Shown: positions 6,450 through 43,429 of the stretch, one piece after another | How the letters are laid out: each line of letters starts with the position of its first letter | Numbering within the stretch: position 1 is the first letter of the stretch | NCBI GenBank assembly: GCA_035084275.1 | Contig: CM068761.1 | Span: 8,370,001-8,434,000, forward strand | Reading direction: 5' to 3' | From: Hydrolagus colliei | Lineage: Eukaryota | Length of the DNA: 64,000 nt | Notes under the pieces: generated by a model | Seen by the model: only the letters and a program-made list of their open reading frames with translations | Told to the model about the DNA's origin: nothing | Database searches by the model: none | Program-made: the position numbers and the translations under genes

Positions 6450-7060
6450 TTAATAAATGTTTTTGTTTAAATGTTTCAAAAGCTTGACAAGATAATATGT
6501 CAGTTGTAGAGCACCTTTCATGTCAGGATGATATCCCATGGTGCTGAATAGTGCTGAATAGTCAGGAGTCAGGACCCGACCATGGGTGGGGAGGGGGTGC
6601 AGGGTTGGGATGAGGGAGGGCAGAGATATAGGAGAGTGGCTGAAGGCACGGTTGAACAGGAGGATCTTGAGGTGAACCTTGAAGGAGGCAAAGGAGGGAG
6701 CAAGCCAAAGGGATTGTGGGTGAAGTGCCAAAGGGTGGGAGCAGAGAGACTGAATGTCCGGCTGCCGATGGTACGGTGGGTCGGGCCAGAGTAAAAAACA
6801 GGCTGGAGCCCACTGAATAGAGGGAGGGGACAGGTTGATAGGGATAAGCAGGTCAGAGAGGTAGGAGAGGGCAAGGCCCTGAAGATGAGGATGAGGATTT
6901 TGAAACCTATCCTCTGATGGATGGGGGAGCCAATGGAGACAGGTGAGGGTAGGGGTGATGGGATCAAGGAGCCTACTGCGAGAGCAGAAGCGTTTTTAAT
7001 GTTGGTGCAATCAGTGCAATGCATTGTCAGGCCCCTCATATTGCTGACCCCCAAAGTAAT
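6450..7060 (-). mobile_element. L2 LINE 3' fragment
   Basis: ORF 6569-7054 contains IHQRIGFKILILIFRAL...FSLSAPTLW; typical 3' tail near 6450-6540. Confidence 0.75.
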
Positions 7061-8929: not shown

Positions 8930-9565
8930 CCCATGCTACCGTGACACTTGTCCACGCATCCATCACATCTAGGCTTGACTACGGGAACCCTCTCCCTGTT
9001 GGTCTTCCCAGCTCCTCCCTTTACAAGCTGCAGATTATTCAGAACTCTGCAGCTTGTGTGCTCTCCCACTAGGCTCCGCGACCACATCACTCCCACCCTC
9101 GCCCATCTCCACTGGCTCCCCGTCCCCCAGAGGATCGAATTCATGGTTCCTCATTCTCACCTTGAAGGCAATTCACGGCCTTGCCCCCGCCTATCTCTCT
9201 GACCTGCTGTCTCCCTATCAGCTTGCCTGTCCCCTCCGTTCAGCAGGCTCTGGAGTGCTGCAAGTCCCCCACCCGAACCGCTCCACCATCGGTTTTCAGC
9301 CTCTCTGCCCCAACACTCTGCTACATCACGCAATCCCTTCACCTTGCTTCCTCCCTTTCCTCCTTCAAGGCTGGTCTCAAGACCTTCCTCTTCAACCGTG
9401 CCTTCTGCTCCCCTCCTAACTCTCCCCCCTTTCCTACTCTCCTTCTCCCTGTCCCTACCCCAACCCATTCCTCCCTGCTCGGGTTCCAACCTAGCTGTTC
9501 AGCACCTTGGGACATCCTCCCGATGTGAAAGGTGCTCCATAAATATAATTTTGTTGTTGTTGTTA
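8930..9565 (+). mobile_element. L2 LINE 3' fragment
   Basis: [15 protein letters not shown]...[10 protein letters not shown]...HITPTLAHLHWLPVPQRIEF, ending in ATGTGAAAGGTGCTCCATAAATATAATTTTGTTGTTG tail. Confidence 0.85.
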
Positions 9566-10104
9566 TTTCTGTCAACAATGAAGTAAGAGACAGTGAGGGC
9601 TTTGTCGGAGAGAGCAGATATTTCATTGGGTGATGCACAGTTGGCAGAGGAATGTGTAAGATGAGAGGGGAGGGAATAGGTGGATTGACAGGGACGTTGG
9701 GTATATAGATGTTGGGTATATAGACGAAGGAGAAGAGGTTTGCCCCTGTAATCTGGGGAATGGGGCACTCAAGATGGATGCTGCTGATGGATGCCAATGA
9801 TAAATACCATAGTGAGCCTGATGCTGGATTCCTAGATTGGAACAGAAGGAGGTTATGGGAATGGTCAAGTGGAAAATGGTGGCAGCGGAGGACCAAGCGA
9901 GAATAATGGAGGGTAGTGATCTGGGATTGTGAGAATGGGGGCATTTTGGGGGAAGGCATCTTAGGGGTGGCAGCCATAGAGCATAGACCTAGACTGAGAA
10001 CAGGTGAAGACAGGGTGGATACTAAAACTGGGGACAGTGCAAAGGGGAAATAAGGTGAACAAAGGCACAGTTGAAAAGGAAGATTTGGAGGAGATACTTG
10101 AATA

Positions 10105-10645
10105 CAATAACCTAACAGACCTGCTCTTCCTAAATAAAGATCTAGTTCCCTTTTAAAAGCTATTATGGAATCTGCCTCCACCAGCTTTTCAGGCAATACA
10201 TTCCAGATTTGAACAATCCGCTGAGTGAAAAAAATTATCCTCAGCTCCCCTTTGCTTTGTTTTGAAACTATTTTAAATCTGTGACCACGAGTCACTGATT
10301 GCCCTACCAGTGGAAACAGTCTTTCCCTATTCACCCTGTTGAAACCTCTCATAATCTTATAAATCTCTATTAGGTCTCCTCTCAATCTTCTTTGTTCTAG
10401 AGAGAAGCCTAGTCTATCTAGCCTTTCCTCGTAGCTGAAGTCCCTCATTCCTGGTGCCATCCTGGTAAATCTCCTCTGCACACTTTCCAATGCTTTAATG
10501 TCCTTCCTAAAGTGTGGTGACCAGAATTGTAAACAGTACTCCAGCTGAGGCCTAACCAAAGTCTTATAGAGGTTAATCAGCACTTCCTGACATTTGTATT
10601 CTATACCCCTATTTATAAAGCCTAGTATCCCATATGACTTCTTAA
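10105..10645 (-). mobile_element. CR1 LINE 3' fragment
   Basis: LYKTLVRPQLEYCLQFWSPHFRKDIKALESVQRRFTRM...DLIEIYKIM (CR1 ORF2 C-terminus). Confidence 0.9.
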
Positions 10646-10649
10646 CAAC

Positions 10650-12120
10650 AACAACAACAACAACTTTGATTTATATAGCACCCTCCATGCCGGATGGCGT
10701 CTCACAGCGCTTTGCAATAGCGGATCCCGGGACCGAGCCAGGAGCAGGAGCAGAAAGGTGACCAAAAGCACGGTAGAAGAGAAAGGTCTTCAGCTGTGAC
10801 CTGAAACTGGGAAGAGAGGGGGCGAGGCAAAGGGAGTGAGGAAGGGAGTTCCAAAGCCTCGGGGCATAGTGGCTGAAGACACAGCCACCGAGGGTGGAGC
10901 GGAGGATTCGGGGGACATCTAGGAGGTCAGACCCAGAGGAGCGAAGGCAGCGGGTGCTGGTTTGGGGAGAGAGGAGATCAGAGAGATAGGGGGGTGTTTT
11001 GAAAACAAGGGTGAGGATCTTGAAGTCGATCCTCTCTGGGATAGGGAGCTAGTGAAGTCTGGCAAGGACTGGGGTAATGGGGGAGTGAAGCTTGGAGCGG
11101 GTGAGTATGCGGGCGGCAGAGTTTTGGATTACCGGTAGCTAGATTTTGTGGATTGCGGTGGAGGGGAGACCGGAGAGGATGGAGTTGCAATAGTCCAGCC
11201 GAGAGGTGACAAAGGCATGGACCAAGTAGGGAACGGCGATATATCGGTGTATCGGTAAAACCCGATATGATTTTCATATCGATATGCCAATATAGACATT
11301 TTACAAATACCGATATATCGGCATGCGAGCACAATCAACTACAAGACCCAGAATGCTCATCTCTATACACAATGCACAGACCGAGGTGCAAAGCCGCCAT
11401 CTTGTATTCATAGTCCTCGAATACAATATACAGGTATGCAAGGGGTGGGGGGAGAGAGACGGCTGTGGGTGGGGGGGGTGAGGGGGAGAGACACTGCTGG
11501 GGGGGGAGGGGTGAGGGGGAGAGAGACGGCTGGGGGGGCGTGAGGGAGAGAGAGATGGCTGGGGGGAGGGGGAGATACACGGCTGGGGGGGGGGGAGAGG
11601 GGGAGAGAGACGGCTTGTGGGGGAGAGGGGGAGAGAGACGGGGGCGGGGGTGCGAGAGAGGGACGGCGGGGGGGTGGGGGGGGGGAGAGACGGGGTGGAT
11701 GTGATAATATACAGATAGATAGAGATGGGGGGGTATGTGAGAGAGGAGAGAGGGAGAGAGACATAGAGAGACACAGACAGAAAAACACAGAGATGGAGAG
11801 AGTGAGAGACACAGAGAGAGGAAAAGATATTTACCTCCTGAGAAGATAGGCTCCGAATGCGCGCGCACCCGGAACGCGCGCGCACTGGGATGCGCGCGCA
11901 CGAGCAGTACGAAAAACTGAAAATATCGGTATTTCGGTATATCTCGATATGAGCCAACCGATATATCCATATCCGGAAAATTCCCATATCGCAGTTCCCT
12001 AGGACCAAGGTTTCAGTGGCTTTTGTGGTGAGGTATTGCCGGAGACGGGCGATCCATCGGAGTGGTAGAAGGCAATGCTGGTAACGGCCAGATGTGGGGG
12101 AGGAAGGGCTGTTGGGGTCG
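10650..12120 (-). mobile_element. L2 LINE 3' fragment interrupted by hAT MITE copy 2
   Basis: L2 sequence (ATETLV|[10 protein letters not shown]) is continuous across the MITE; tail at 10650-10690. Confidence 0.75.
11227..12001 (-). mobile_element. hAT-type MITE, copy 2 (same family as 4007-4712, opposite orientation)
   Basis: TIRs TAGGGAACGGCGATAT / TAGGGAACTGCGATAT; perfect 8-bp TSD GGACCAAG at 11219-11226 and 12002-12009; internal sequence alignable to copy 1. Confidence 0.9.
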
Positions 12121-12193
12121 AACTCTGCTTTCTGTCTCGCAGCCAGTTGTGGATCCACACTACCACTGTCCCTTTAACGCTGTGGGCCTCTGT

Positions 12194-12363
12194 TGTTATA
12201 TTAGAGATATAAAAGAGAGACCGTGGAGAGATCGCCTTTCATGTAAAGCGGCTTTATTAAGAATGACCAAAAGCATGCAATTCCGTGTGCTACCACAGTG
12301 GTCACGAGAGGGCGCTATAACCGTTACATTTACATAGGGCACAGTGATAAGCATAATTCTACA
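12194..12363 (-). repeat. 3' LTR (170 bp) of the Gypsy element
   Basis: TGTAG...ATAACA on minus strand directly after PPT GGGGGGGAGA; contains AATAAA; its last ~29 bp recur at 14305-14333 next to the PBS. Confidence 0.8.
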
Positions 12364-14333
12364 TCTCCCCCCCAAGTACAGACAGGTGTACTTTAAGATC
12401 ACTTAAAAATTAAGACGATCAGGAGGTTTCACTGCACGTCCAGAACAGCTGGTGGCCTTCTAATACTCGGTGTTTGTGACAATGATGGAGACGGTGAAAA
12501 CTTCTGAGGTGAAGTTGCGGTCTGTTCTGTTACATCAGTAGGTGTAGTTGGTGCAGGTTCCAGTAGTGGTTTTTTAGGTGGTGTTTTAACCAGGACTGAT
12601 CGGTTTCGTCAAACTGTACCGGGACTGGTTTGTATGATGTAGGATCGTGGGTTGGAAGTTTGTTTGAGGACAGTTCCGTGGCGGTCCTGGTCTCGGATCC
12701 AAACAGAGTCGCCGGGATGAAGTTCTGGCAAATCTCTACCGCGGTGACGAAGGTTGAAGTTTTGTTGCTGGTTTGTGCAATATACCTCTTCTTTCTGTCA
12801 GATCTTCTGTTCGGATTGAACCTTTGGTTGAAGGCTTGATGGAAGAATAGGCAATGTTGTTTTAAATTTCCTGCTCACTTGGTGACAGCCCATTCTGGAG
12901 AGGAGACGCTCTGTATGTCAGGAGGGCAAGATAGGGATCTTCATTCTTTTTGAGTAGCCCTTTCATTGTACGAACTGTTCTCTCAGCTTCGCCGTTTGCC
13001 TGTGGGTACCTTGGCAAACTGGTGTTGTGTACGAATCCGTACTTCTCAGCGAACTGGAGGAATGAGGCTGAATTAAATTGCGGCCCATTGTCAGAGACCA
13101 CCAAGTCTGGGATCCCGTGGACGGCAAAGATTTCTTTCAGTGCTCTGATAACGGTTGCTGAGGTTTGGGATTTTATTTCTATCCAGCGGGAGTAGTAGTC
13201 GACGACGATGAGAAAAATCTTCCCTTAATATTCAAATAAATCCAACCCCAGCCTTTCCCACAGATGTGATGGGAATGATGCTGGCAAGAGAGGCTCGCGT
13301 TGTTCTGGTTGGTGTTTGGCACAAGTCAAACATTTAGAAATAATTTATTCTTAAGTCTTGGAGAGACCTGGCCACCAAACAGGTGTACGTGCTCTGGCTT
13401 GGCATTTGGTGATTCCCTGATGGCCTTGATGGATGCAGTCAAGCATTTCTAATCTCATGGTTCTGGGAATGACAATGCGGTCGTCATAAAGAAGAAGATT
13501 GTTGAGGACAGAGAGATGACTTTTACTTTCCCAGTACTGGTGAAGTAGTGGTGTGTGTGGTATGTAAGCAGGACATTGTTGACTTGAATGGCGTTGTCTC
13601 CCACACCATTGACAATAATCGGCCTTGGAATCTCGCGTTTGCTGCACTAGTTTGCTCGACTTTAAGCTGTTGTTGTTGGATGGAGTTTTGCGTTTAGTGA
13701 CATGATGGATGCTAGTGGATCTGATGTCACCACGGACTATGTCATGGCTGTCATATCTTGCCTCAGACTGTCGGCATATATGGACCGCTTTGTCAAGCGT
13801 GAGGTCCGCTTGGGTCTGACAATTTTTCATCCAGCACTCCAACAACATTTCTGTCACTGATCAAGCTGTCCTTGAGCTCGCCATATTGACAGTTATCCGC
13901 TAGTCAAAACAAATCTTGTATAAAACATCAATGGATTCGCCTGGCACTTGTTTTTGCCTGTTAAACCGAGCCCTCTCCACGATCACATTTCATTTGCCTT
14001 CATAATGTTCAGCTAGTGCTTCTATAACTTCATCATATGTTGCAGTTTTCTCATCTATTCTGAGAGTGATTATAATATTATCAGCGCAATCTCCCATGGA
14101 AAATAGAAGTGTGCTCACCTGTTTTATATCTTCTTTTTCATTGAGACCTGAGGCAATGTGATAGCATTCAAAATGATTGATCCATTTAAGCTACAATTCA
14201 CATTGGTCTGGTCCATTTCCACCCTCAAACTTGCCTGTCAAATTAATCTGGGTTGACAGATGTGTAGCCATGTTGTGGGTTTAACATTTGGAGCACTGCC
14301 ACCATATTATATTCGAGATATAAAAGAGAGACC
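12194..14333 (-). mobile_element. Internally deleted, degenerate Gypsy-type LTR retrotransposon
   Basis: PBS TGGTGGCAGTG (14294-14304), gag start at 14271 (KWINHFECYHIASGL..QVSTLL), zinc knuckle [14 protein letters not shown], integrase [21 protein letters not shown] and VSDNGPQF..PRYPQANGEAERTV, PPT 12364-12373. Confidence 0.85.
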
Positions 14334-14659
14334 ATTGGTGTCAGAAGTGGAATTTTTCAGTGGTGTAACAGAATGGGTGGACAAGGGCAGCGCAGTTGAT
14401 ATAGTTTACATGGACTTTCAAAAGGCATTTGACAAAGTGCCGCATGAGAAGCTTATTAGGAAGCCTCCAATACTGTGACATTGGCTGCATTTTCTTCTCT
14501 TGTGAAGACAGAGGCAAAGTACTCATTCAGTACATCAGCCATGCTCTCTGCCTCCGCAATAAAATTTCCTCCTTGGTCCCTTATTGGCGGCACCCTACCC
14601 TTGACCAATCTTTTACCCTTGGGTAGGAGGACATAATAGATAGGAATATATTAAGGCAT

Positions 14660-16371
14660 TAATATCTGTCTTTGCACCTGTCTTCGCAACGGAAATGGAT
14701 GCCCCAAATACCACAGTATTGGATGAGAGGGTACAGGAAATAGATCAGATTACTATAGGCAGAGAGGAAGTTCTGAAAAGATTGACTGGCTCAAAATTGA
14801 TAAGTCACCAGGACCAGAGGTTGCTGTGGGAGATACGGGTTCAAATAGCTGAGGCTCTGGCCATTATATTTCAATCTTCATTGGACACAGGAATGATGCC
14901 AAGAGACTGGAGAGTGGCTAATGTTACCCCCTCTACAAAAAGGGGCAGTAAAACAAACCCGGAAATTGCAGGCCAGTCAGCCTTACTTCGGTAATAGGAA
15001 AACTACTGGAGACCATAATCTGGTAAAGAATAAATCTCTACTTAGAGGAACACAAAGTAATTAGAGACAGCCAACATGGATTTGTTAAAGGCAAATCTTG
15101 GCTAACAAATCTAAAATAATTTTTTGAAGAGGTGACTGCGAGGGTTGATGAGGGAAATGCGGTGGAAGTTATTTACATGGATTTCAAAAAGGCTTTGGCA
15201 CTGTACCACATAAGAGATTAATAAAAAACATTAGAGACCCATGGTATTAAGATCCAGTTTGGATTAAGAATTGGCTGAGTGACAGAAAGCAGAGGATGGT
15301 GGTTAATGGGTGTTTCTCGAAATGGAAGGAGGTGTGCAGCGGTGTCCCCCAAAGATTGGTATTGGGACCACTGCTCTTTCTAATATATACTAATGATCTG
15401 GACTTGGGCATAGAGAGCACTATTTCGAAGTTTGCAGATGTTACGTAGTTAAGCAAGGTAATAAATAATGAGGAGGACTGTAACCAACTGCAAGCAGACA
15501 TACACAGAATGGTGGAATGGGCTGACATGTGGCAGATGGATTTCAATGTGGATAAGTGTGAAGTGATACACTTAGGTAGGAAAAATGATAGGAGGCAATA
15601 TAGACTTGGTAGCTCAATCATAAGGGCGTGAACGTACAGAGAGATCTGGGAGTTCAAGTAAGTGAATTATTAAAGGTAGCAGGGCAGGTAGATAAGGCAG
15701 CAAAAAAAGGCATTTGGTGTACTGAGCCTTATTGGTAGGGGCATAGAGTATAAAAGTAGGGAGGTTATGGTTAATCTATACAAAACACTGGTTAGGCCTC
15801 AGCTGGAGTACTGTGTTCAGTTCTGGGCACCTTACTTCAGGAAGGACATTAAGGCACTGGAAAGGGTGCAGAGGAGATTCATGGGAATGATACCAGGAAT
15901 GGGGAACCTTAGCTATGAGGACAGGCTGGAGAAGTTAGGACTTTTCCCATTAGAGCAGAGAAGGTTACCCGGGGACCTGATAGAGGTCTTCATGATCATG
16001 AAAGGTTTTTACAGGCTAGATAGAAAAAAGCTGTTCCGCTGGTAGGTGTGTCTGTGACCTATGGTCACAGTCTTAAGATATCTACCAAAAGAAGCAGAGG
16101 GGAGGTTAGAAGAAATTATTTACTCAGCGAGTTGCTCGAATTTGAATGATCTGCCTGAAAGGGTAGTGAGGTCTGATTCGATAGCAGCTTTTAAGAGAGA
16201 ACTAGATAGGTATCTGGGGAAGACGGGTTTGTAGGTGATTGGGGTTAAAGCTGGTGATTGGGGTTATTGAAAGTGACTTGCTCGGTCAAAGAGCCGGCAC
16301 AGACTCAATGGGCTGAATGGCCTCCTTCTGTGCTTTAACATTCTACGATTCTATAATTCTATGATTCTATG
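14660..16371 (+). mobile_element. Older CR1 LINE, 5'-truncated and degenerate
   Basis: RT-region fragments (ORFs 14695-14994, 15767-16045); (ATTCTATG)n-type tail at 16341-16371. Confidence 0.9.
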
Positions 16372-17744
16372 AATATATTTGTGGGTGACTAAGTACCTTG
16401 AATTTGATTCACTGGAGCCTGGCGAGGACCGGTTGATGGAAATATGGAGTTTAGTGCAGAAGAGTTGAAGTTTATGGATGGTGGGTTTTGCGAGACCAGT
16501 GAGGAGTATGTTAAAAAAAACAATCTAGCTTGGTGGGGATGGCTAAGAGGTTCTGGAACAGTTACAGTTGAGCTAAGTAATGTGATGATAATAATAATAA
16601 TCCTTGCATTTGGTATAGTGCTTTTCACGTCTTCTAGACATCTCAAAGTGCTTCACAGAATGTACCATAAAGTGAATTAACTGTATATTTGTGGGTGGTA
16701 AAGAATATTTGATGGAGGTAAAGAACAGTAGTCTTAGTCTTGGATTTAGTCAGAGTCTGGATGTGAGGGAGTAAAGAGAACTGAGGATCGAGCCAGACTT
16801 CAAGATTTTGCATGAGTTTGATGAGTTTGAAAGTGTGGCCAGGGAGTTTGAAGAAGTCAGGGCTAGAGGAAAGATAGCACTGGCATGAACCAAGGAAGCT
16901 GGTTTCTGTCTGAGTAAATATCATCTAACTAAACATAATTTCATTTTAGCTCATTGATGGATGTCCAAGTCTTGATGGATGTCAAGGATGTGGACAGTAG
17001 ATCTGGAATCAAGAATGGAAGTGGAGAAATAGATTTTGATTTTTAGATTTAGTTTCCATCTCTAACAGAGAACATATAGATGAGGAAGAGGATAGGGCTA
17101 AGTCGAACCACAAAGCTTATTGAGTGAGAATGGAGGGAGAAACCATTGGAGGAAATAAAGTGGAAGCAATAGGTCAGGTACTACAAGAACCAGTAAGACA
17201 CATTTCCATAGAGGTCGATAGAGAGATGATCAAGAAGGTACAGCAGACAGAAGGGAGAGAGTCCTGTTTGCAGAGAGATTATATCATTGATGGCCTTGAC
17301 AAAAGCTGAATCACTGCTGTCGGTATAGTGGAGGTAGGAAGTGCAGGGAAGGGTGGAAGCTGAGTTGAATGCAACAATGCTTTCCAAGACTTTGGACAAG
17401 GAGGGTAGATTGCAGATGGGCTGCTATTTGGAGTGTATGAAAGGATAAAGGAATGTTTTTGTTTAGATGGCCAGGTTGATGATAGGTTTTTGAAGGGCAG
17501 GGGGAGAGCATCAGAAACTAGAGAACTTGTGAAATGTCCTAATTTTCAAATTTATCTAGTCTGCCTAGCCCTGTATTCTCACCTGCACCAAATTCTGCAC
17601 ATCCATGGTTCCATTCCTCCCAATAAACTGACCGACCGACCGACCGACCGATCAAGGCACTGGACAGTTAGGTAGGAACAAGAGCAGGCGGCGAAGGGGT
17701 TGGGGCAGGATGAAGAAGAGTAGGAAAATTGACTGTATGTTTGT

Positions 17745-19085
17745 GGGCAAAATACAGCAGCAAGATTATGATGCTATTGCGAGTTCCACACTCTGGAACT
17801 CCATCCCACAGTCGATTCGCCTCGCTCCCTCCCTCGCCTCCTTCAAGGCCAGTCTCAAGACCCTCCTCTTCGTCCATGCTTTCTGCTGCCCTCCCAATTT
17901 TCTCACTCCCCTCATAACTCTCTCCTGCCCCTTCCCCCTATCCTGCCTCACCCCCTTGCGCGGGTTCCGACCTGATTGTTCAGCACTTTGGGACATCCTC
18001 CTGATGTGAAAGGCGCTTTATAAATGTAATTTTGTTGGTGTGTTGTTGGCACCATTCCCAACTATGTAAAAACACCCATCCTCAACCCCCAAAAACCTAC
18101 CCTAGACCCATCCATGCTCTCCATCTACTGTCCCATCCACAATCTGCCTTTCCATTCCAAGGTCCTGGAATGAGTTGCTGCTTCCCAGCTTCACCCCGTC
18201 TTCTCCTGCGACTCCCTGTATGATCCCCTTCAATTGGGTTTATGTGCTGCCCACAGTAGCAAAACAGCCTTGGTCAAAGTGAAAATTACATTTTGTCCAT
18301 CTGTGACCACAATTCCCTCTGTTTTCTTGTCTTTCTTGATGCTGCCTTCAAAACTATCCACTACCTCTTCTTTCAGCTCAACCTTCCTGGCCCTATCCTT
18401 ATCTGGTTCAAATCTTACCTCTTGTACTGTTTCCTCTTTGTTTCCATAAATGGCTGGCTTCTCCTCCAGCCTCTGCAACATCTCATGTGGTATTCCTTGG
18501 GGCTCAATCTTTAGTCCTCTCAGTTTCAGTATCTACATATGTCATCCCGACCTCAAAGGTGCTCTGTAAATGTTATTTTGTTGTGTTGTTGTACATGCTC
18601 TATCTTGGTAATTTCATCTGTAGATATGTGGACAACTTCCATATATATGTGGATGAAACCCAATTACCCCTAACCTCACTTGGCTATGTTGGCTCCCCAT
18701 CCTCCAGAGTATCAAAGTCTTCAAAGCCTACCCAGCCTTGCTCCATCCTACCTCTCTGAACTGCTAACTCCACATTGACTTGCGCACTCTGTTCAGTAAA
18801 GGCTTTGGCCTGCTCCATATCCCCGCCTGGCTGACCCCACCATCAGAATCAGGCCTTCAGCCTCTCTGCCCCAACCTTCATAATTCCATCCTACACTCCA
18901 TTTGCATTGCTCCCTCCACTGCCTTCATCAAGGCTCATTTCAAGAACCTCCTCATGACTGTGTCTTTTGCTTCCCTCATTTTGCTATCCTCCATGCCCTC
19001 CATCCCAGCTGTGTTCCAAATCTCTAGCTGTCCAATGCTGGATGTCCTGTCAACATGGAAATATAAATATAATTTGTTGTTGTTG
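17745..19085 (+). mobile_element. L2 LINE fragments (two or more pieces)
   Basis: TLWNSIPQSIRLAPSLASFKASLKT; HSSKTALVKV..VFL; two L2-type tails at ~18000-18040 and ~19050-19085. Confidence 0.65.
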
Positions 19086-19274: not shown

Positions 19275-19282
19275 ATTTGCAT
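19275..19282 (+). promoter_or_regulatory. Ig octamer ATTTGCAT, cluster 1 promoter
   Basis: Exact octamer in light-chain orientation, 126 bp before leader ATG; present in all three V promoters. Confidence 0.9.
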
Positions 19283-19407: not shown

Positions 19408-19456
19408 ATGGGCGATTGGCTCCGATTTCTGGCCGCTTTGCTCCTGTGTCTACATG
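19408..19456 (+). CDS. IGL: Ig lambda/type II light chain cluster 1, leader exon (MGDWLRFLAALLLCLH)
   Basis: ATG, hydrophobic signal peptide, phase-1 donor G|GTAAG; acceptor CTCCAG at 19577-19582. Confidence 0.93.
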
Positions 19457-19582
19457 GTAAGCGCTGCGGAATCCGCACTGATCTCAATTAGCTTCACTTT
19501 GTACAGTTAGTTCTACAGTGTGACCTCTCTACAGTGTGACCTATCTACAGTGTGACTTATCTGTGACTTGTTATTTCTCCAG

Positions 19583-19912
19583 GAACAACCGCAGCTGTTA
19601 CCCTGACTCAGCCACCGTCCATCTCAACCTCCCCGGGAAACACCGTCAAGATCACCTGTACCATGTCCGGAGGCAGCATCGGCGGCTACGGCACGAGCTG
19701 GTACCAGCAGAAGCCTGGCAGCGCCCCTGTGTTTGTTTGGTATGGGAGCTCCACCAGAGGTCAGGGGATTCCTGATCGATTCACTGGTTCTGTGGACTCA
19801 ACGAGCAGCTCCATGCATTTAACCATCAGCGGTGTGCAGCCGGAGGACGTCGCCGATTACTACTGTTATGTGAATCGTGTCTTCGGTAAAGGGACCAAGC
19901 TGAGTTTGGGAA
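19583..19912 (+). CDS. IGL: Cluster 1 germline-joined VJ exon (CDR3 YVNRV)
   Basis: VTLTQPPS..KITC..WYQQKPG..GIPDRFTGS..EDVADYYC-YVNRV-FGKGTKL in one open frame, donor A|GTAAGT; no RSS between V and J. Confidence 0.95.
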
Positions 19913-20459
19913 GTAAGTGATGTTTCACATAGTACACTTTAAGTTTTAGTGGATCGATTTTTTAACGTTCAGTGTTTGTCTTCTTTTTTTTAGGTTTGTT
20001 TGAGTTTAAAGTTGCTTTGTGTTAGGTTTCGAAGTATTTTCAAAAATCAGATCATCTCTAAGTGAAATTGTAAATTTTTTTCAATGTTAAGTATTGCAAA
20101 GTTCACAAAACCAACGAACAATGAAGAAGAATTGATTTTATCCAAATATGGTTCCGGTGATAAGCTTTTATATTAAACTTTGTCGATTGAAAGCCTTAGA
20201 ATGCATGTCTACAGTGCAGAGACTCCAGTAAACAATGAGCTATAACAGGGAAAAGAAGAAAATATTTCATAGTTGCGATCCAAGATCTTCCTGATTAATT
20301 CGTTAATTTTTTTTGCATTCAAATTTTATTTGAGGTTTGTAAGTTTGCATTTGGTGATATTTTAAGAAACTTCAGCACAAGAAGATAAACAGCAGCCTTC
20401 ACTTGCTGGATCTCCTTGAGCTCTCAAGGGCAGTGCTGTTGACCAACTGGTGAATCGTC

Positions 20460-20800
20460 CGACTCTAAAAGGGAACAGAATAATAATTCTTGTATTTGAT
20501 GTACTGCCTTAGCGCATGGAAGTAAATTAGCTCTATATTCTGTGGATGAAATGTGGCAATCAATTGCGCACAGCAGTTTCCCACAAATAGTCATGGATTG
20601 AGTGACCAAATTATTATTTTTTGAATGGACTATTACTACCAAAAAGCGATCTGCCAATCGACCATGAACTAGGTTCCTGCTGCTAGGTAAATAAAGGCGT
20701 ATGGAATAAGGAAACTTTCCCAACATTTCAGCCTGTAAGGAATCGAATCCACGTCTCTCCCTTGCGAGACGAGTGCTCTAAGCACTGAGCTAAAGGACCC
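20460..20800 (-). mobile_element. tRNA-derived SINE in cluster 1 J-C intron
   Basis: Minus-strand tRNA-like head (GCTCAGTGCTTAGAGCAC..GATTCGATTCC) plus the body shared with other SINE copies in the window. Confidence 0.7.
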
Positions 20801-21082
20801 CATCATAATGTAATAACGTGGAAATGTTTCCTGTGGGTGATTGAATATGGTGAGGATTGAAACGTTCTAGAGACACTTTTCGACTGGCAATGAGAGCGAG
20901 TCACTGGCAACAACTGAGGGATGAGTTTCTCTTACCAACAATTCACGTTAGATTCTGATCTTTAAAGTAATTGAAGTGCTATGATCGGCTCACTGAGCAT
21001 CGCTGTTAACGCGGTTTGATACAGTGCAACAAACCCCAGTTTTGCCATTTCCATCTTTAAATATTAAATATTTTACTTCCAG

Positions 21083-21126
21083 ACCCTCGCGGCCCTTCGG
21101 TGACTGTCCTTCAGCCGTCACGAGAT
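21083..21126 (+). pseudogene. Truncated C-exon 5' fragment with intact splice acceptor inside cluster 1 J-C intron
   Basis: TTTTACTTCCAG|AC CCT CGC GGC CCT TCG GTG ACT GTC CTT CAG CCG TCA CGA GAT = PRGPSVTVLQPSRD; compare C exons PRAPSVTVLPPSPD / PRGPSVTVLPPSPD. Confidence 0.9.
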
Positions 21127-22259
21127 GTACGCACCTTTTATTGCCAGCATTTATCTTCCGATTTCTAATTTTACAAACTTATTTGGTTCTCCCAATTCCG
21201 TGGTTGATGTCGCTAAGGGCAGCACCACTGGAGAGACTCAACAATATCATGGTTGGTCAGATGGGAATCATCGCTCATTAAAGACAAAGGTTGAGCGCCG
21301 GCTCAATCTGGTCAAAATACATTTTCTCCTTTGAAAATTAATTTGATTATTTCCCTCAGGCATCATATTAAAGGGATTCCGATTTGTGTGTTGTGTATTG
21401 TGATTTTGTATTGTGCGCTATTAGTTATGAATTAAAATCAGCAAATACGGTGCCAAATAAATTATTGTGAAATCGGAAGCTCCTCTCGGTAACAAATCAA
21501 AGATTGGATTCTGATTGTGCTCCTGAATTGTTTTTCAGTGCAGAGTGTTTGGTCAAAAGGAAAACATTTATTTTCTTCCCATTTTCAGGTTGTTACTCTC
21601 TATACAAACTCTATATAATTAATAATAATGTTTCATGAGCTTTCGATCAGCAGCTCCCGCCACATACTTCTTGTGACGCGATATTTAGTGTCTGGTGTTA
21701 TTTCTTATGATTGTAGTTATTAATTACATCAACACAGGAAAATTCGAACGCGTCTTCAGCACTGCAAAAAAACAGCATAACACCGTAATAAATGGTTCAT
21801 TTCAATACAGAACTGTTAGTGGGATACTGCTGTGCGCAATTGGCTGCCACGATCCACCCGAATATATACAGACAATTCACTTTACAGTATATTTGGGGAG
21901 CTTAGAGACGACTAGAAGACGTCAAGGGCACAAGACCAAATGGAACGATTCTTAATATTATTATTATTGTTGAGCTCTCAGCAGCAAAGTATTGATAGTA
22001 TAATAATGAACGGTGTGTGATGGTGTATGATGACCCCAACAGTCATTGTTCCCTTACAATGTTACACTTTGTCACCGTTGAAAAGTACCGTCTACAACTC
22101 TGTACAAGAAAATGTTTTAGCATTTACAGGAATGCGAAATACTGTATAGGATTATTTATTGGTCATCCTGGAGTTTTGTCCTGCTATTCAACAGACCGAT
22201 TGTATCTTAAAATGTTAAAAAACTGAATTTCAACTTTTTTATCCATATTTTTCTTCCAG

Positions 22260-22582
22260 ACGCACGGGCCCCTTCCGTGACTGTCCTGCGGCCGTCACCA
22301 GATCAAATCACAGCAAAGAGCAAGGCGACCCTGGTGTGTCTGGTGAATGATTTTATCCCGGGAGCTGTGGAGGTCAAGTGGACTGTGGATGGCAGTGCCA
22401 GAAATGAAGGTGTTGAAACGAGTGCGATCAAGCAGGAGGTGGACAACACGTACCGTGTGAGCAGTTATCTGACTCTGCCAGCCTCCGAGTGGGAGTCACA
22501 CGAGCTGTATTCCTGTCTGGTCACACACGAGACTCGGGAGACTCCGCTGGAAAAAACCATCGCCAGATCCAGTTGTATCTAA
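22260..22582 (+). CDS. IGL: Cluster 1 constant exon (C-lambda/type II)
   Basis: Acceptor TTCCAG, phase 1 in frame with VJ1; ATLVCLV..VEVKW..YRVSSYLTL..EW..YSCLVTH..SSCI*; AATAAA at 22638-22643. Confidence 0.95.
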
Positions 22583-25254
22583 ATCTGCAATTTGCAGTGC
22601 TGGCCGAATATATCTTTGGCAATCTGACTTCAATTATAATAAATGTGTTTGTGATCGTTTGGAAATCATGATCATTTTGTCAGGAATGCCCAACTTGGGA
22701 AACAAATTCGCTTTGTAAACACTTTCGGTAGATATCCCGACAGGAGTAAAGAAGCTCTTAGATGTTTTAAGTATTGTACTGAAACCCCAGCAATAAAAAA
22801 TCTCAGTTTGCCTGAATCGAATGCTTGCATTTTACAGTGTATTCATGCTGCAACGATGAAGCCCCTTGTACAACATTAGAGAAATAACAAATACCGCATC
22901 TTAGTAAAATGACTCTTTCATGGTTCTCTGTTCCGTGGCTCTTTTACTTCCATTCCTTCTCTTGATTTTATTCATTTTGTTTCGCGTATCTCAAGATTTA
23001 GTTTTATATGAATGTTTAGATTTTTTTTAGGTAAACACACACCAGCGTTTGTAGACTGTCATCCAATGGGAAAATACATATTTCGTCTAGAAATTGTAGA
23101 CGCAAGGGAACGTAAATACCTTGATGCCTCATGCTTCCCCAGCGGCCGGGCAGCAAGCCCGTAGTTAGTTTAGATACTCAAACGGTTGTATTTTAAAATG
23201 AAAAATTTATCGTGGAGAATTTTGAGCTAAAATAACTTCGGTCGTTATCCGGGAGCCGTTTCATGTCGTGTTTTGAAAGGGAAACAGGTTTCAAATTCAA
23301 CTGAAAATAAAGTGAATTTACTTTTAAGCATTTTAAGTAAATATTAAATGTTAAGCCATGAACCGTTAACACGCTAAGCAAAAGTGAAATGTCTGCCCCA
23401 ATAATGGTATACATCGACACTGGATTTGGGATCTATTTCACTGAGATGCTTTTGACACTAGCCCCTACTCCCTCACCTCTCAAGCTAACCAATGTCTACA
23501 GAACTACATAAATATATATATGACCATACACATAAGGCAATCATTATGCCAAGCTTTCATATTGCTTAAAGACGTGAAAAGATATTGAAAAGATATATGT
23601 CCATCAGCCAACCAAGTACACATGAAACGAGTTAATGTGCCATTCCCCCAGTTACTGCACCAACCCCCCATCCACCCACCCCCAGTATATCCCAAGCCGC
23701 CAAACCTGCTGTTGAGAAACCAGCTTCCTCTTCGCAGGATTTTATGGAGTTTTTAAACAACTGCGGGTGTCATTGCAGTTTGTTTCAATCGTTTGTTGCA
23801 ACCTTTAAATCGATGGGCATTACACCATGTATTGTTGTTGTATATTTTCAGATCAAAATTGAAACAAATAATACTAATAATAATCATTGCATTTGGTATA
23901 AAACAATATATTATTGAAATTGAACTATGATGAAAGATAACTTTTAACATAGTTCAATTTCAATAATATATTGTTTTATACCAAATGCAGACAATAACAT
24001 ATCGGCCATGTCCCAGTGGCAGTAGGTAATGACGTAATAGAATAGTTTATTTTAAAAACTTTAATAAACTTCTAAAATCGTGAGCGTACGAATCTGGTAT
24101 ACAATTCAACCATTGAATAATACAATATTGAAGTATGAGTTGGGAGAAATTACCAGTAAGAATAGTACAATTGAATGTGTCAATAAGACCAATGACTGTC
24201 GAAACATTCAATACAATCGACAGAAAGCGGAGTGTTTTCTACATTCACAAGATATAGTCTGCTGTTCACTCAATCTGAGAATTTGCATCTATTCGTGGTT
24301 ATGAATGGTTATCAGAACCAACCAGGTCGGACATCCACGTTGACGCATTCTGAATCATGCCCTAATTTGTGAGTCAAAACTGCAAGTGTTGATGGTTCTT
24401 TATTTGGGAGGGAGATTCAAAAAAGTTACTTTGGCTGTTCTTCAGCAACGTTTTATATTTTAGTTTAATGGCCACCATGCCCGTAGTCCACTGAGAATAC
24501 ATTTTCATACGGCATGAAGTGTTGGTTTTGGATAACGATATTTAGAAATTCGCTTTAACGATCAAAACCAACCAACATAATACGTTTATGTATTTATCAA
24601 ATTTCTTGCTTGAACATCATTGCAAAGACTTCAGCTGATGGCAGCCATGTGAACTAAGACTGCCTCATCGTCCAACAAAGTCTGCAATCGCAGAGAAGAT
24701 TTGTTCTGGTCAGTCGGGATTTATAACCATTACAGTAACCCATCAATATATTTATAATGATCAATATAATAGGGAGAATTCACCAGTACAGACCGCCAGA
24801 ATGGTGATCTGTTACACACCATCTATTATCATAAAGATACCAAACTGGAATGTACAAGTAGTAGAATTCATGTGGCTATCCAAAGTGATTACAAGAAAGA
24901 AATTATGAACTCAGGTAGATCAGCAAATATATCGATCTGCAAATTTAATGCGGGTAATATGTAGCAGCAATTACTCTATGTAAAGTCATGTTGATGCAAG
25001 TTGTTGTTGTTGCTTTTCATCAATGTGACGACCAAATTTTGCAGTTTTATGATTCATAGTATTGTCGCTCTTCTTGTTTATACGAGAAATAAAAGAACCG
25101 CTTCCGTTATCTTCCTGAATATTTGAGTAGAAATTCCACGTGCATCTATTGAACTACAGAAAGTGGTTCTCGAAGTTAAATATGAATTGATCAGGTTGAC
25201 AATTTATGCAAACTTTAGAATGCTACATTAATAGAGTATATTTCGTATCTTATA

Positions 25255-26907: not shown

Positions 26908-27185
26908 GATATCCTGTAGCTCAGTGTTTAGAATTACAAGCGAGGGACCTGGATTCGATTCCAGGCAGGGTGAAACTTTGGGCAAGTTTCCTTACTCCAC
27001 ACGCCTGATAAAAATCGCTAAAAAAAATTCATGACTGTTTGCTGGACACTGCTTTGCGCAATTGGCTGCAGCGTTTTGTCCACATATATACAGTCAATTA
27101 ACTTTACAGGATAATCCGTGAAGCGCTATGAGACGCCGAGAAGACGTTAATCGCCATATCAAATAGAGGATTATTATTTATTATT
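26908..27185 (+). mobile_element. tRNA-derived SINE upstream of cluster 2 promoter (paralogue at ~42696-42975)
   Basis: Head CCTGTAGCTCAG..GGATTCGATTCC, same core and tail; same position upstream of cluster 3. Confidence 0.7.
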
Positions 27186-27476: not shown

Positions 27477-27525
27477 ATGGGCGATTGGCTCCGAGTTCTG
27501 GCCGCTTTGCTCCTGTGTCTGCATG
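27477..27525 (+). CDS. IGL: Cluster 2 leader exon (MGDWLRVLAALLLCLH)
   Basis: ATG, signal peptide, G|GTAAG donor, 98-bp intron. Confidence 0.93.
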
Positions 27526-27623
27526 GTAAGCGCTGCGGAATCCGCCCTGATCTCAATTACCTTCACTCTGTACAGTGTGACCTGTCTACAGTGTGACTTA
27601 TCTGTGACTTGTTATTTCTCCAG

Positions 27624-27953
27624 GAACAACCGCAGCTGTTACCCTGACTCAGCCACCGTCCATCTCAACCTCCCCGGGAAACACCGTCAAGATCACCTGT
27701 ACCATGTCCGGAGGCAGATTCAATACCTACACGAGCTGGTACCAGCAGAAGCCTGGCAGCGCCCCTGTGCTGCTTATCTATCAGGGCTCAAAACGATTTC
27801 AGGGGATTCCTGATCGATTCACTGGTTCTGTGGACTTATCGAACATGCATTTAACCATCAGCGGTGTGCAGCCGGAGGACGCCGCGGATTATTACTGTTT
27901 TTCCGGGTATGACACTTTCATCTTTGGTAAAGGGACCAATCTGAGTTTGAAAA
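27624..27953 (+). CDS. IGL: Cluster 2 germline-joined VJ exon (CDR3 FSGYDTFI)
   Basis: Open frame with both Cys, WYQQ, YYC, FGKG; donor A|GTAAGT; no RSS. Confidence 0.95.
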
Positions 27954-29673
27954 GTAAGTGATCTAGTTTCGACTTTCGATGATTATTGTGATCTAATTCT
28001 CCTACAGTTTCAACAATAATAAAAACAACAAAAAGCGAACAACATTGCTCTTGTATAGAGCCTTTCACGTGAGGAGGACGTCCAAATATAATTGCATGTT
28101 TGTCTGTATTCGATATTGTTTCACACGCTTTCTGTGATAGTCGCATCTGGTTTCCTAATGATAAACTTTTTATGTGGAAATCAGAAATTTTAAAGAATCA
28201 AACACGCGAAACCTGATCTGAACTGAAATTCTATGAAAAATTTCGACGAATATTACAGCCAACTAACAATGGTAAAAAGGTGGAGAAATGAATTAAATTA
28301 GCCAAGCGGAGTTAACCGTGGTGATATTTATATTTAACAGTCTGAAGGACTGAAGATCTCAGATTCACTGAAGCACCGCTTAGAGATCCTGGTAAAGAAT
28401 GAGCTACACCAGGGAAATGAGTTAACACTTCACACCTGAGATTGAAGTTAAATCTCTTTGCGCCAGATTATTTAATTTCTATGTTTACTTGTTAACCTCT
28501 TTCCCCAGTTTGTCAGCACGAAGTGATATTTAAAAGAATCTCCATCATAAGGAGATCAACAGCATCTTTCCATCTGGTGACTGTCGCTGGGGTCTAATGG
28601 ACCGATTGGTGAGCGGTTCTATCTCAGAGGGAACCGGATTCCATGAAAATAGTGTTCGTCCGTGACTAACTGATCATTTTGAAAATTTAAACTTCTTTGA
28701 GAGTGAGGGGATTGTGTAATTGATGATAGAGAAGAACTGTAGGGGAGTTTGTTCGCAACATCATTATGGTTACAAATCGAATCCATTATTTTCAGAATAA
28801 TTCAAATGTTACAGTCTGCTCCGTGTAATTGCCAACAATCTTTGCATTTTAACATTTTTCGATTCCAGAGTTCTATTCGGATTTCCTCAAACGTTTTATT
28901 TTCTCCCCCTCTATCCCCATTAGAATACATTTGTATTTTTACCATGTATTACGCGCATTTATCTTCAGATTTCTAATTTTATAAACGTACTTTACAATCT
29001 CCCAGTTCCGTGTTTTATGTCACTAAGGGCAGCACCACTGGAGATACTCAATAATATCATGGTTTTCACCACAGGTTGGTGCTGTTGGTCAGATGGGAAT
29101 CATCGATCATTAAAGACAGAGGCTGAGCGCCGGCTCAATCTGGTCAAAATACATTTTCTCTCTTGAAAATTAACTTTATCACTTCCCTCAGGCATCATAT
29201 TAAAGGGATTCCGATTTGTGTGTTGTGTATTGTGATTTGTGTATTGTGCGCTATTAATTATGAATTAAAATCAGCAAATGCGGTGCCAAATAAATTATCG
29301 TGAAATCGGAAGCCCCTCTCTATAACAAATCAAACATTGGGTTCTGATTTTGCTCCTGAATTGTTTTTCAGTGCAGAGTGTTTGGTCAAAAGGAAAACAT
29401 TTATTTTCTTCCTATTTTCAGGTTGTTACTCTCTATACAAACTCTATATTTGAGACGCCTAGAAAACGTCAAGAGCACTATATCAAATGCAAGGATTATT
29501 ATCATTATTATTGTTGAGCTCTCAGCATCAAACTATTGATAGTATAAAATGAATGGTGTGTGATGGTGTACGATGACCCCAACACTCATTGTTCCCTTTA
29601 CATTGCTGCACTTCGATTGTAACTTAAGATGTTAAAAATGAATTTCAACTTTTTTTCCATAATTTTCTAACAG

Positions 29674-29996
29674 AGCCGCGAGGTCCTTCAGTGACTGTCC
29701 TTCCGCCGTCACCAGATCAAATCACAGCAAAGAGCAAGGCGACCCTGGTGTGTCTGGTGAATGATTTTACCCCGGGAGCTGTGGAGGTCAAGTGGACTGT
29801 GGATGGCAGCGCCAGAAGTGAAGGTGTTGAAACGAGTGCGATCAAGCAGGAGGTGGACAACACGTACAGTGTGAGCAGTTATCTGACTCTGCCAGCCTCC
29901 GAGTGGGAGTCACACGAGCTGTATTCCTGTCTGGTCACACACGAGACTCGGGGGACTCAGCTCGAAAGAACCATCGCCAGATCTAGTTGTATCTAA
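29674..29996 (+). CDS. IGL: Cluster 2 constant exon
   Basis: Acceptor AACAG, phase 1; intact C1-set domain ending SSCI*; AATAAA at 30114-30119 and 30311-30316. Confidence 0.95.
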
Positions 29997-34900: not shown

Positions 34901-35050
34901 GGAGGTGGAACAAGTGAGGGTGAAGTGGAGGTTGATGTCGTTGAGGATGATGAGATGAAACGTGACATCCGATCGGAGGAGGCGCAGAGGTAAGCTAGGA
35001 GTTGGAGAAGTCAGAGATGAAGGTTTGGGAGAGTCAGTGCTGGAGGTGAT
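31953..35050 (-). mobile_element. Long degenerate L2 LINE (endonuclease to 3' tail) interrupted by a solo LTR
   Basis: EN-like LIILNDINLHF..THVHGHPFNLVIT near 34750-34950, RT fragments, tail at ~31953-32010; paralogous copies at 48113-49040 and 59652-62230. Confidence 0.8.
32650..33391. mobile_element. Solo LTR (742 bp)
   Basis: Begins TGTAG, ends CACAACA; 4-bp TSD CATA (32646-32649, 33392-33395); absent from the paralogous L2 at ~60575. Confidence 0.75.
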
Positions 35051-43122: not shown

Positions 43123-43130
43123 ATTTGCAT
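43123..43130 (+). promoter_or_regulatory. Ig octamer ATTTGCAT, cluster 3 promoter
   Basis: Exact octamer; E-box CACCTG at 43158-43163. Confidence 0.9.
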
Positions 43131-43254
43131 AAATTGTGAATTCAACTGGACTTGCATCACCTGATGGTTCTTAAGGAGAAGTTTACAATCGAGCAGTAAA
43201 GTGGCTTTTGTCTGTGAATCACTAATTTCTCTGATGTTCATCAATCTGTTCACA

Positions 43255-43303: not shown

Positions 43304-43429
43304 GTAAGCGCAGCGGAATCCGCCCTGATCTCAATTACCTTCACTTTGTACAGTTAGTTCTACAGTGTGACCTATCTACAGTGTGACCTATCTACAGTGT
43401 GACTTATCTGTGACTTGTTATTTCTCTAG

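Follow-up and report, generated by a model that had tools for sequence, protein, structure and literature searches.

Light-chain gene of cluster 1

The window, by which we mean the whole analysed stretch of 64,000 nucleotides from Hydrolagus colliei, contains neither a single N nor a gap and harbours four lambda-type clusters in tandem. The light-chain gene of cluster 1 in this holocephalan is of the germline-joined lambda type (type II) and intact; its parts are located as follows:

19275..19282, forward strand: octamer ATTTGCAT of the cluster 1 promoter (direct reading), likewise present at the equivalent position of clusters 2 and 3
19408..19456, forward strand: leader exon MGDWLRFLAALLLCLH, phase 1, donor ATG/GTAAGC
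19583..19912, forward strand: germline-joined VJ exon, V-set domain (translation, Pfam)
22260..22582, forward strand: full C exon, C1-set, acceptor TTTTTCTTCCAG, stop codon TAA at 22580-22582
22638..22643, forward strand: AATAAA, poly(A) signal of the cluster 1 gene (direct reading)

V and J are contiguous within the single exon 19583-19912, with neither a spacer nor a recombination signal between them, and its translation contains the canonical Cys, Trp and YYC residues, followed by the CDR3 YVNRV and by FGKGTKLSLG. The J donor is GGAA/GTAAGT (19912/19913), and Pfam recognises the V-set domain with 55 bits against a cut-off of 26. The C domain (C1-set, 92 bits) is encoded by a single exon which joins in phase 1 and ends in a C-terminal Cys (...ARSSCI). 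Translation of leader and VJ exon joined to the acceptor at 22260 yields a normal light chain of 233 amino acids, which, like the AATAAA at 22638, is in agreement with the original prediction. With this distal acceptor cluster 1 reads as an intact and typical light-chain gene with a V-set and a C1-set domain.

The best match of the encoded protein is a Hydrolagus colliei cDNA (84% identity), while a Callorhinchus milii sequence reaches 81%; beyond these two species shark and ray lambda-like chains follow. The V region on its own is 90% identical to the Hydrolagus colliei cDNA P0002. Within the window it is close to that of cluster 3, the L-V introns of the two clusters likewise sharing 96% identity. 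The CDR3 of cluster 1 had been singled out as the shortest and indeed comprises five residues compared to 8 in cluster 2 and 11 in cluster 3. A CDR3 of this length is a recurrent form among lambda chains with a normal C domain: sharks, a sawfish and Callorhinchus account for the 9 homologues, out of 104, in which it is present. The idea that short-CDR3 chains form an old lineage matching the diverged intron described below (lineage X) was dropped since the V tree groups the sequences by species and not by CDR3 length class.

A C-exon stub within a mosaic J-C intron

The J-C intron of cluster 1 is a mosaic of two sequence lineages which meet directly behind a short piece of C exon:

19913..21082, forward strand: proximal intron of separate ancestry (lineage X)
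20520..20825, reverse strand: tRNA-derived SINE copy, tRNA-like head at 20729-20799 (Rfam tRNA, 31 bits, E 0.001)
21071..21082, forward strand: C-type acceptor TTTTACTTCCAG, a probable relic (direct reading, approximate PWM)
21083..21126, forward strand: first 44 bp of a C exon, a probable relic, encoding NPRGPSVTVLQPSRD in a J-compatible frame (identity, BLAST)
21127..21132, forward strand: junction GTACGC, non-homologous, doubling as a weak cryptic donor
21127..21168, forward strand: read-through tail codons VRTFYCQHLSSDF followed by TAA at 21166-21168 (translation)
21133..22259, forward strand: distal intron, lineage Y, of the type present in clusters 2, 3 and 4 (82-88% identity)
21252..21590, forward strand: block conserved in all four clusters, mostly 88-100% identity, two windows between clusters 1 and 3 at 76-82%
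21780..21895, forward strand: SINE fragment in opposite orientation to 20515-20625, the stub being enclosed by these two arms

The original prediction of a second C-type acceptor 1170 bp past the J donor, followed by 44 bp of C-exon sequence, proved correct. The 44 nucleotides match the beginning of the C exons of clusters 1, 2, 3 and 4 at 36, 37, 38 and 39 positions, respectively, and that of a Callorhinchus milii C exon at 38 positions. Since BLAST E-values inside the window range from 1e-13 to 2.5e-9, this match does not result from chance. The 14 residues retained in the stub lie inside the natural variation of lambda C N-termini. The 20 nucleotides 3' of the stub agree with the C exons at 8-9 positions, which corresponds to the random level. 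No comparable stub was found in either of two Callorhinchus milii J-C introns.

Exon homology ends at 21126, and the switch to an intron of the cluster 2/3/4 type, also part of the original prediction, takes place between about 21133 and 21148, homology being clear from the latter position. From 21133 onwards cluster 1 is co-linear with the middle of the J-C introns of cluster 2 (28941), cluster 3 (44706) and cluster 4 (56317), through the C exon and beyond, individual windows of this lineage Y part reaching 88-100% identity. To the same paralogues, identity is at most about 60% upstream of the junction versus 82-88% downstream of it.

The first ~55 bp of the lineage X intron are of an ancestral type and contain a 26-bp stretch which is common to both Callorhinchus milii clusters and lost in clusters 2 and 3. 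Apart from the segment 20156-20482, no match to 19925-21067 was found in the rest of the window. This segment shows ~60% identity to, and is co-linear with, 28320-28600 of cluster 2, 44135-44393 of cluster 3 and 55741-55989 of cluster 4, and is taken here as probable old intron paralogy. It was also considered as a dispersed repeat, but no further copies were found in the window or in the Callorhinchus milii locus; it may still be a low-copy repeat. Nor does an intact cluster with a lineage X intron occur in the window or in that locus. A second breakpoint at 19924 could be ruled out, as the BLAST edge observed there reflects the 26-bp deletion in clusters 2 and 3 while cluster 1 still matches Callorhinchus milii. 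Hence, with the proximal intron being the natural continuation of VJ1, there is only one true breakpoint. A tandem duplication inside cluster 1, reaching from the middle of the intron to base 44 of the C exon, was ruled out as well: the 250 bp upstream of the stub match the corresponding 250 bp before the real C exons at random level (62-63%), and the SINE copies lie in inverted rather than direct orientation. Stub and distal exon do not form a split C exon either, since every join attempted duplicates or shifts bases. Elsewhere in the locus, cluster 4 has lost its leader, its VJ exon and the first ~175 bp of the intron, an instance, in the same array, of a large deletion with one of its ends inside the J-C intron.

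Copies of the SINE are numerous in the window and in the Callorhinchus milii locus. ARAGORN reports no tRNA in the cluster 1 intron; Rfam did detect the tRNA-like SINE head. The duplex formed by the inverted SINE arms is calculated at -97 kcal/mol compared to -33 ± 5 for shuffled sequences and could loop the stub out. The conserved block contains an E-box (CAGATG), is partly conserved in Callorhinchus milii, and is a candidate intronic regulatory element which the fused gene would have retained.

Splice signals of the stub and its predicted product

The splice matrices used are approximate and suited for ranking only. On this scale the stub acceptor obtains 3.7 bits in contrast to 7.1-10.2 bits for the working C acceptors; it ranks outside the top 10 of the 128 AGs in the cluster 1 intron, several of which outscore it. 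Its longest pyrimidine run comprises 5 bases, whereas the working acceptors have runs of 7-10, except for that of cluster 3 with 4-8, an A/T-rich insertion of ~11 bp standing in place of the T-run. A yTnAy motif is absent between -9 and -60 of the stub acceptor, the sole one being located at -8, while three of the four working C acceptors carry it at -19, cluster 2 being without it and having only CTAAC at -4. The core (-12..+2), in contrast, differs by a single base from the working acceptor of cluster 1. As far as these signals tell, most of the pyrimidine tract is gone and the acceptor is degraded outside -12..+2. The stub most likely represents a relic or decoy splice site. At 21127 the junction offers the weak cryptic donor GAT/GTACGC (4.3 bits on the approximate matrix), and splicing the stub as a 44-nt cassette by means of this donor would lead to a frameshift ending in ...SRDTHGPLP*.

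As originally predicted, leader and VJ joined to 21083 remain in frame and continue from ...KLSLG into NPRGPSVTVLQPSRDVRTFYCQHLSSDF*, a tail of 28 residues terminated by the TAA at 21166-21168. The predicted V-J product would keep the J strand FGKGTKLSLG and a complete V-set domain, its tail having a calculated pI of 8.2 and a net charge of +0.8. The codons at 21127-21168, however, consist entirely of junction or intron sequence, and the TAA is conserved in the introns of clusters 2-4. The 13 codons past the junction compare with a median random open stretch of 16 in the cluster 1 intron, and there appears to be no sign of selection on the reading frame of the tail. Conserved intron sequence of clusters 2-4 likewise accounts for the ATTAAA/AATAAA hexamers (21277 and 21456). 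The argument that a stop codon in a would-be last exon evades NMD is formally correct provided that no further splicing takes place after the stub. A search with the tail in 5.8 billion proteins returned a single candidate, a normal horn-shark lambda chain. Since the locus's own lambda proteins are absent from that database, the missing match says nothing on expression. A chain without C domain lacks the C-terminal disulfide to the heavy chain and does not release CH1 from BiP, a step which depends on CH1/CL-assisted folding.

Origin of the mosaic structure and known systems compared

We consider it probable (roughly 70%) that cluster 1 is a hybrid gene which originated from a deletion fusing two clusters, that the stub is its relic and that an ordinary light chain is to be expected. 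A germline deletion would have joined a more diverged cluster lying upstream to a copy of the cluster 2/3/4 type, the join falling midway in the J-C intron of that copy. From the upstream cluster would come everything as far as base 44 of its C exon, namely promoter, leader, joined VJ and a J-C intron of 1170 bp, while the conserved intronic block, an intact C exon and the poly(A) site would come from the downstream copy. The resulting gene would produce the ordinary light chain by splicing from 19912 to 22260, the stub being no more than a weak decoy acceptor and any V-J chain with the 28-residue tail constituting a by-product which is not selected. Because cluster 3 has a closely similar V region and L-V intron, this scenario requires gene conversion or homogenisation in the V part as well. 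The sequence itself shows the mosaic structure, the junction, the reading frames and the weakened acceptor context, and it is from these that we infer both the deletion mechanism and the choice of acceptor. Lambda loci evolve via unequal crossing-over and gene conversion, leaving pseudogenes behind (PMC2188323).

The stub acceptor is transcribed 1.2 kb ahead of the real one, and appreciable use of it may occur, its core being nearly intact and 44 nt of real exon, along with possible enhancer motifs, being kept. Clearly less probable than the fusion is a situation in which the stub, as a terminal exon or as the frameshifting cassette, captures a substantial share of the transcripts, leaving cluster 1 crippled, with low output or effectively dead, and its truncated products degraded. 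The weak donor at 21127 would suit such a cassette, and pN/pS of the C exon is slightly raised in pairs involving cluster 1 (0.37-0.74 versus 0.14-0.44 in other pairs), though these counts are tiny (6-9 changes); moreover, the cluster 1 C exon has Ala at a position where 96 of 103 homologues have Pro. Against it, the stub acceptor scores far below the real one, the inverted SINE arms could remove the stub from competition, and there is no damage to the C exon, the VJ exon, the promoter octamer or the conserved intron block. Such intactness is weak evidence either way, since the unused C exon of cluster 4 stays intact as well. That the apparent stub stems from a false join of two similar clusters during assembly is very improbable. 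Tandem arrays with units of 82-97% identity are prone to such failures, but assembly misjoins normally fall in shared sequence, whereas here non-homologous points (base 44 of a C exon and the middle of an intron) are linked with no shared repeat at the junction; besides, the proximal 1.2 kb are unique in the window, not another cluster's copy, and the window is free of gaps.

The original prediction had gone further and suggested that one gene could make both a full light chain and a V-J chain with a Cys-containing tail, loosely like a V-only or surrogate light chain. In the full form of this reading both acceptors are used and the V-J chain is a functional, selected product. An open frame through the stub with the stop in a would-be last exon, the preserved acceptor core, the 14 residues compatible with a lambda C N-terminus and the complete V-set domain would all fit, and no surrogate chain is known in cartilaginous fish (PMC9614664). 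We nevertheless regard this reading as unsupported and its likelihood as very low, and the same low odds apply to one promoter giving rise, by choice between two C-type acceptors, to an ordinary light chain as well as to a V-J domain, secreted or retained in the ER, whose short tail bears a Cys. Junction and intron sequence makes up the tail, which is of chance length, the stub forms one edge of a rearrangement scar whose flanks differ in ancestry and is missing from both Callorhinchus milii clusters examined, the acceptor context is weakened, and the five-residue CDR3 is common in normal lambda chains. In addition, a product without C domain would achieve neither the heavy-chain disulfide nor the release of CH1 from BiP, and with its J strand kept and its tail nearly neutral it does not resemble VpreB (PMC9614664).

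If the fusion reading is true, cluster 1 illustrates, on a small scale but clearly, the reshuffling of tandem antibody clusters in cartilaginous fish: the VJ of one cluster was placed before the regulatory block and C exon of another, and a neighbouring cluster lost its V. It aids thinking about the exchange of V and C modules while existing knowledge remains unchanged, and as the stub could mislead gene predictors the case is useful for annotating such loci. If, on the other hand, both acceptors were used, cartilaginous fish would possess a C-less light-chain variant with its own role, for example in pairing with or testing heavy chains, and only a regulated use of the proximal acceptor would bear on heavy-chain testing in fishes without surrogate light chains.

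VpreB, as part of the VpreB/lambda5 pair, shares with the predicted product a V-type domain with a non-Ig tail and no C domain. VpreB, however, is a dedicated gene which needs lambda5, whereas the predicted product would come from an ordinary light-chain gene with a full C exon at 22260 in the same transcription unit, and the window contains no candidate for a lambda5-type partner, which would be a J-C gene whose N-terminal region is unique. VpreB furthermore is without a J-encoded strand, has an acidic unique region and is reported to originate in eutherian mammals (PMC9614664). The terminal-exon choice between secreted and membrane mu would be comparable only if distal splicing had to compete with the proximal acceptor together with a poly(A) site in the intron; compared to mu, the stub is without conserved, dedicated signals, its hexamers being common to the introns of all clusters. 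The Callorhinchus milii model P0015 was considered as a parallel case and set aside, as its extra peptide maps to an intron piece in which no obvious splice sites are seen on reading; it looks like a doubtful gene model.

The stub resembles intronic pseudoexons and decoy 3' splice sites, which are numerous in vertebrate introns and mostly ignored, as it combines an AG, a pyrimidine tract and an exon-like start without a matching downstream donor. Unlike typical decoys it goes back to a genuine exon of this gene family and is therefore frame-compatible with J. With the type II (lambda) clusters of Hydrolagus colliei and Callorhinchus milii, cluster 1 shares the split leader, the germline VJ, the single C1-set exon and the tandem arrangement, differing from them by the additional acceptor with its 44-bp C stub and by the J-C intron of two lineages. 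Germline joining of lambda genes holds for every species studied (PMC5192425). The human IGLC J-C array, too, is a tandem lambda family in which recombination between copies yields hybrid and defective units; this array, which includes pseudogenes, evolved through gene conversion as well as unequal crossing-over (Vasicek and Leder 1990, PMC2188323). In cluster 1, by contrast, the remnant resides inside the intron of an otherwise intact gene and not in a separate pseudogene, and the join is non-homologous, as would be expected of a deletion, rather than an unequal crossover within homology.

Light-chain clusters of the window

The 64-kb window contains 0 gaps. Its plus strand bears four C exons, three of them in complete light-chain clusters and the fourth on its own.

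Light-chain exons of the window and the SINE within the J-C intron of cluster 1
Cluster 1: L 19408-19456, VJ 19583-19912, C 22260-22582; plus strand
Cluster 2: L 27477-27525, VJ 27624-27953, C 29674-29996; plus strand
Cluster 3: L 43255-43303, VJ 43430-43786, C 45816-46138; plus strand
Cluster 4: C 57392-57714 only; plus strand
tRNA-derived SINE: 20520-20825; minus strand; Rfam tRNA model 31 bits at 20729-20799

In all complete clusters V and J are pre-joined in a single exon. The spliced product of cluster 1 comprises 233 aa and has two domains, V-set and C1-set. In the database it comes closest to a Hydrolagus colliei light-chain cDNA (84%) and to lambda-like chains of Callorhinchus milii (81%); lambda chains of sharks and rays come next. 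The germline-joined V and J together with these relatives therefore identify the window, as judged from its sequence, as part of a lambda/type II locus of a chimaera (holocephalan). In every cartilaginous fish studied, V and J of this isotype are joined in the germline (PMC5192425). In every respect tested, cluster 1 has the features of a germline-joined lambda cluster.

In the L-V introns (19500-19570, 27560-27610 and 43350-43420) the short unit CTACAGTGTGACCT(N)T is repeated in tandem: clusters 1 and 3 each have three copies, cluster 2 has two. This difference in copy number accounts for L-V intron identities of 96% versus 75%. The intercluster spacers are filled by LINE reverse-transcriptase fragments and tRNA-derived SINEs. 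LINE-type reverse transcriptase/endonuclease ORF fragments are located at 36408-37697 (minus strand) and 50274-52476 (plus strand), with Pfam matches to RVT_1 (2e-35) and Exo_endo_phos_2 (9e-9). An 84-bp G/A-rich tandem repeat is present at 11475-11690, and strong positive GC skew with G-rich tracts is observed at 6000-18000, 32000-36000, 48000-54000 and 60000-62000.

The truncated C exon and the mosaic J-C intron of cluster 1

The J donor of cluster 1 reads GGAA/GTAAGT (19912/19913). Located 1170 bp inside the J-C intron is TTTTACTTCCAG (21071-21082), and the 44 bp which follow it (21083-21126, the stub) match the opening 44 bp of the window's four C exons at 36-39 positions (BLAST E as low as 1e-13) and those of one C. 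milii C exon at 38. Past base 21126 the match to the C exons drops at once to 8-9/20. The second C-type acceptor with a truncated C exon claimed by the original prediction is thus present. Translation likewise bears out both predicted outcomes of splicing: joining VJ1, the VJ exon of cluster 1, to 21083 preserves the reading frame and gives NPRGPSVTVLQPSRDVRTFYCQHLSSDF, which ends at the TAA at 21166-21168, while joining it to 22260 yields a normal light chain. The 14 C-derived residues retained in the stub fall inside the usual variation of lambda C N-termini; as coding sequence the stub appears free of decay, a judgement to which 44 bp lend little power. The working C region of cluster 1 (22262-22267) starts with NARAPS; its Ala takes the place of a Pro present in 96 of 103 lambda homologues, and this Pro is kept in the stub.

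Cluster 1 has a mosaic J-C intron, the distal part of which (21133-22259) is of the cluster 2/3/4 type, as had been predicted: from 21133-21148 onwards it is co-linear with the J-C intron middles of clusters 2, 3 and 4 at 82-88% identity, and the co-linearity extends across the C exon to about 400 bp past it. Within the distal part, the block 21252-21590 (paralogues at about 29084-29433, 44847-45210 and 56444-56793) is mostly 88-100% identical in all four clusters, apart from two windows of 76-82% between clusters 1 and 3, while the adjoining intron ranges from unaligned to about 90%. The block carries an E-box (CAGATG) and an octamer-like GCAAAT and is in part conserved, at 66%, in the fetched C. 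milii locus (L001 23237-23671). By its sequence it is a candidate J-C intronic enhancer.

For the proximal part (19925-21067), comparison at normal sensitivity reveals no counterpart in the other clusters. Permissive scoring brings out one stretch alone, 20156-20482, which is about 60% identical to, and co-linear with, 28320-28600, 44135-44393 and 55741-55989 of clusters 2, 3 and 4; further copies of it were found neither in the window nor in the C. milii locus. The family of the SINE at 20520-20825 has other copies, e.g. at 26912-27006, 42697-42794 and 63042-63139, and many in the C. milii locus. A left breakpoint at 19924 was discarded: when 27954-27970 and 43787-43803 are compared with 19913-19965, clusters 2 and 3 share a 26-bp deletion directly 3' of the J donor, of a stretch that cluster 1 keeps, as do the two C. 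milii clusters. The proximal intron therefore goes with VJ1.

The tail residues beyond the 14 C-derived ones are encoded by the junction and by intron sequence. They span 13 codons, compared to a median open run of 16 in the cluster 1 intron, where 58% of random starts reach at least 13 codons, and the terminating TAA is intron sequence conserved in clusters 2-4. ATTAAA (21277) and AATAAA (21456) could end a short transcript. Both hexamers belong to the conserved block, and the other clusters have them unchanged; they did not arise for that purpose.

Origin of the stub

Cluster 1 contains one true discontinuity, the junction 21126/21127-21133, at which base 44 of a C exon is joined to mid-intron sequence without a shared repeat. 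A misassembly is most improbable as its source, because false assembly joins arise within shared sequence and this one connects non-homologous points. A tandem duplication inside cluster 1 was rejected, as, over the 250 bp that precede the stub, identity to the real intron ends is at random level only. The structure is best explained as the scar of a cluster fusion. In the simplest history, a deletion would have fused two clusters into one gene, removing the remainder of the C exon and then the spacer from the upstream cluster, and the leader, VJ and the first ~900 bp of the intron from the next.

A comparable second deletion is found in cluster 4. Its region (55098-57714) holds an intact C exon with the majority sequence of clusters 2-4 and the distal J-C intron, joined near 55549-55552, and lacks the equivalent of 41868-43959 of cluster 3, which covers promoter, leader, VJ and the first ~175 bp of the intron. 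Lambda loci are known to evolve by unequal exchange and to leave defective copies behind (PMC2188323).

Splice signals and likely use of the stub

The AG of the stub acceptor and the twelve bases preceding it match the working acceptor of cluster 1 except for a single base. Upstream of this core an A/T-rich insertion of ~11 bp replaces the T-run. The longest pyrimidine run is 5; among the four working C acceptors it is 7-10, except in cluster 3 (4-8). The sole yTnAy of the stub acceptor, at -8, is too near the AG. Of the working acceptors, those of clusters 1, 3 and 4 have one at -19, and that of cluster 2 has only CTAAC at -4. An approximate position matrix, used for ranking only, assigns 3.7 bits to the stub acceptor versus 7.1-10.2 to the four C acceptors, and places it outside the ten best of the 128 AGs in the cluster 1 J-C intron. 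The cluster 2 C acceptor (29660-29690) reads TTTTCTAACAG/AG, with a weaker tract and CTAAC right at the AG, and 6 of the 11 differences of its C exon from the majority lie in the first 17 nt. No good donor was found 3' of the stub. The junction reads GAT/GTACGC (4.3 bits), use of which would create a 44-nt cassette shifting the C frame to ...SRDTHGPLP followed by a stop. Inverted SINE fragments (20515-20625 and 21780-21895, 1.16 kb apart) bracket the stub, with a predicted duplex of about 100 nt at -97 kcal/mol versus -33 +/- 5 for shuffles. In the pre-mRNA this duplex could place the stub together with the conserved block in a loop and might, we infer, favour skipping of the stub.

We regard the stub as a relic with, at most, minor use as a decoy (probability about 0.7). 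Its near-intact acceptor core might suggest a decoy which takes a substantial share of transcripts and cripples cluster 1; with the short pyrimidine run and low score at the same site, we deem this unlikely. The original prediction of a dual-output gene, making a full light chain and a V-J-only, surrogate-like chain, is unsupported as far as the sequence can tell, and we give hardly any credence to the V-only chain as a selected product, in-frame splicing notwithstanding. A chain devoid of CL forms no C-terminal disulfide to the heavy chain and does not help in CH1 folding; the V-J-tail chain could therefore not replace a light chain. The 5-aa CDR3 of VJ1, which had been linked to a V-only chain, is a recurrent lambda form: of 104 homologues, 9 share it, and these come from sharks, from a sawfish and from C. 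milii. All but one are normal 233-aa chains, the exception being an odd 227-aa C. milii model (P0015); the V tree groups by species, not by CDR3 length. In P0015, a UniProt model, the J end and C start are replaced by a peptide encoded in the J-C intron (L001 12770-12820), around which no obvious splice sites were found on reading; it looks like a doubtful gene model.

A search with the J-plus-tail segment against 5.8 billion proteins returned one candidate only, a normal horn-shark lambda chain sharing NPRGPSV. As even the normal cluster 1 protein finds no match better than 84%, the species is not represented in this protein set, and the missing tail match therefore says nothing about tail transcripts. 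The two J-C introns of the C. milii locus, fetched via the lambda protein P0003, contain no stub.

While the sequence-level structure is entirely as originally described, the likeness to a surrogate light chain does not hold. VpreB, whose reported origin is in eutherian mammals, has no J strand, and its unique region is acidic; it is encoded by a dedicated gene and partnered by lambda5 (PMC9614664). The predicted V-J-tail product of cluster 1, in contrast, retains J, has a near-neutral tail (pI 8.2) and would stem from a standard gene. As a class, exon relics and decoy acceptors are what the stub fits.
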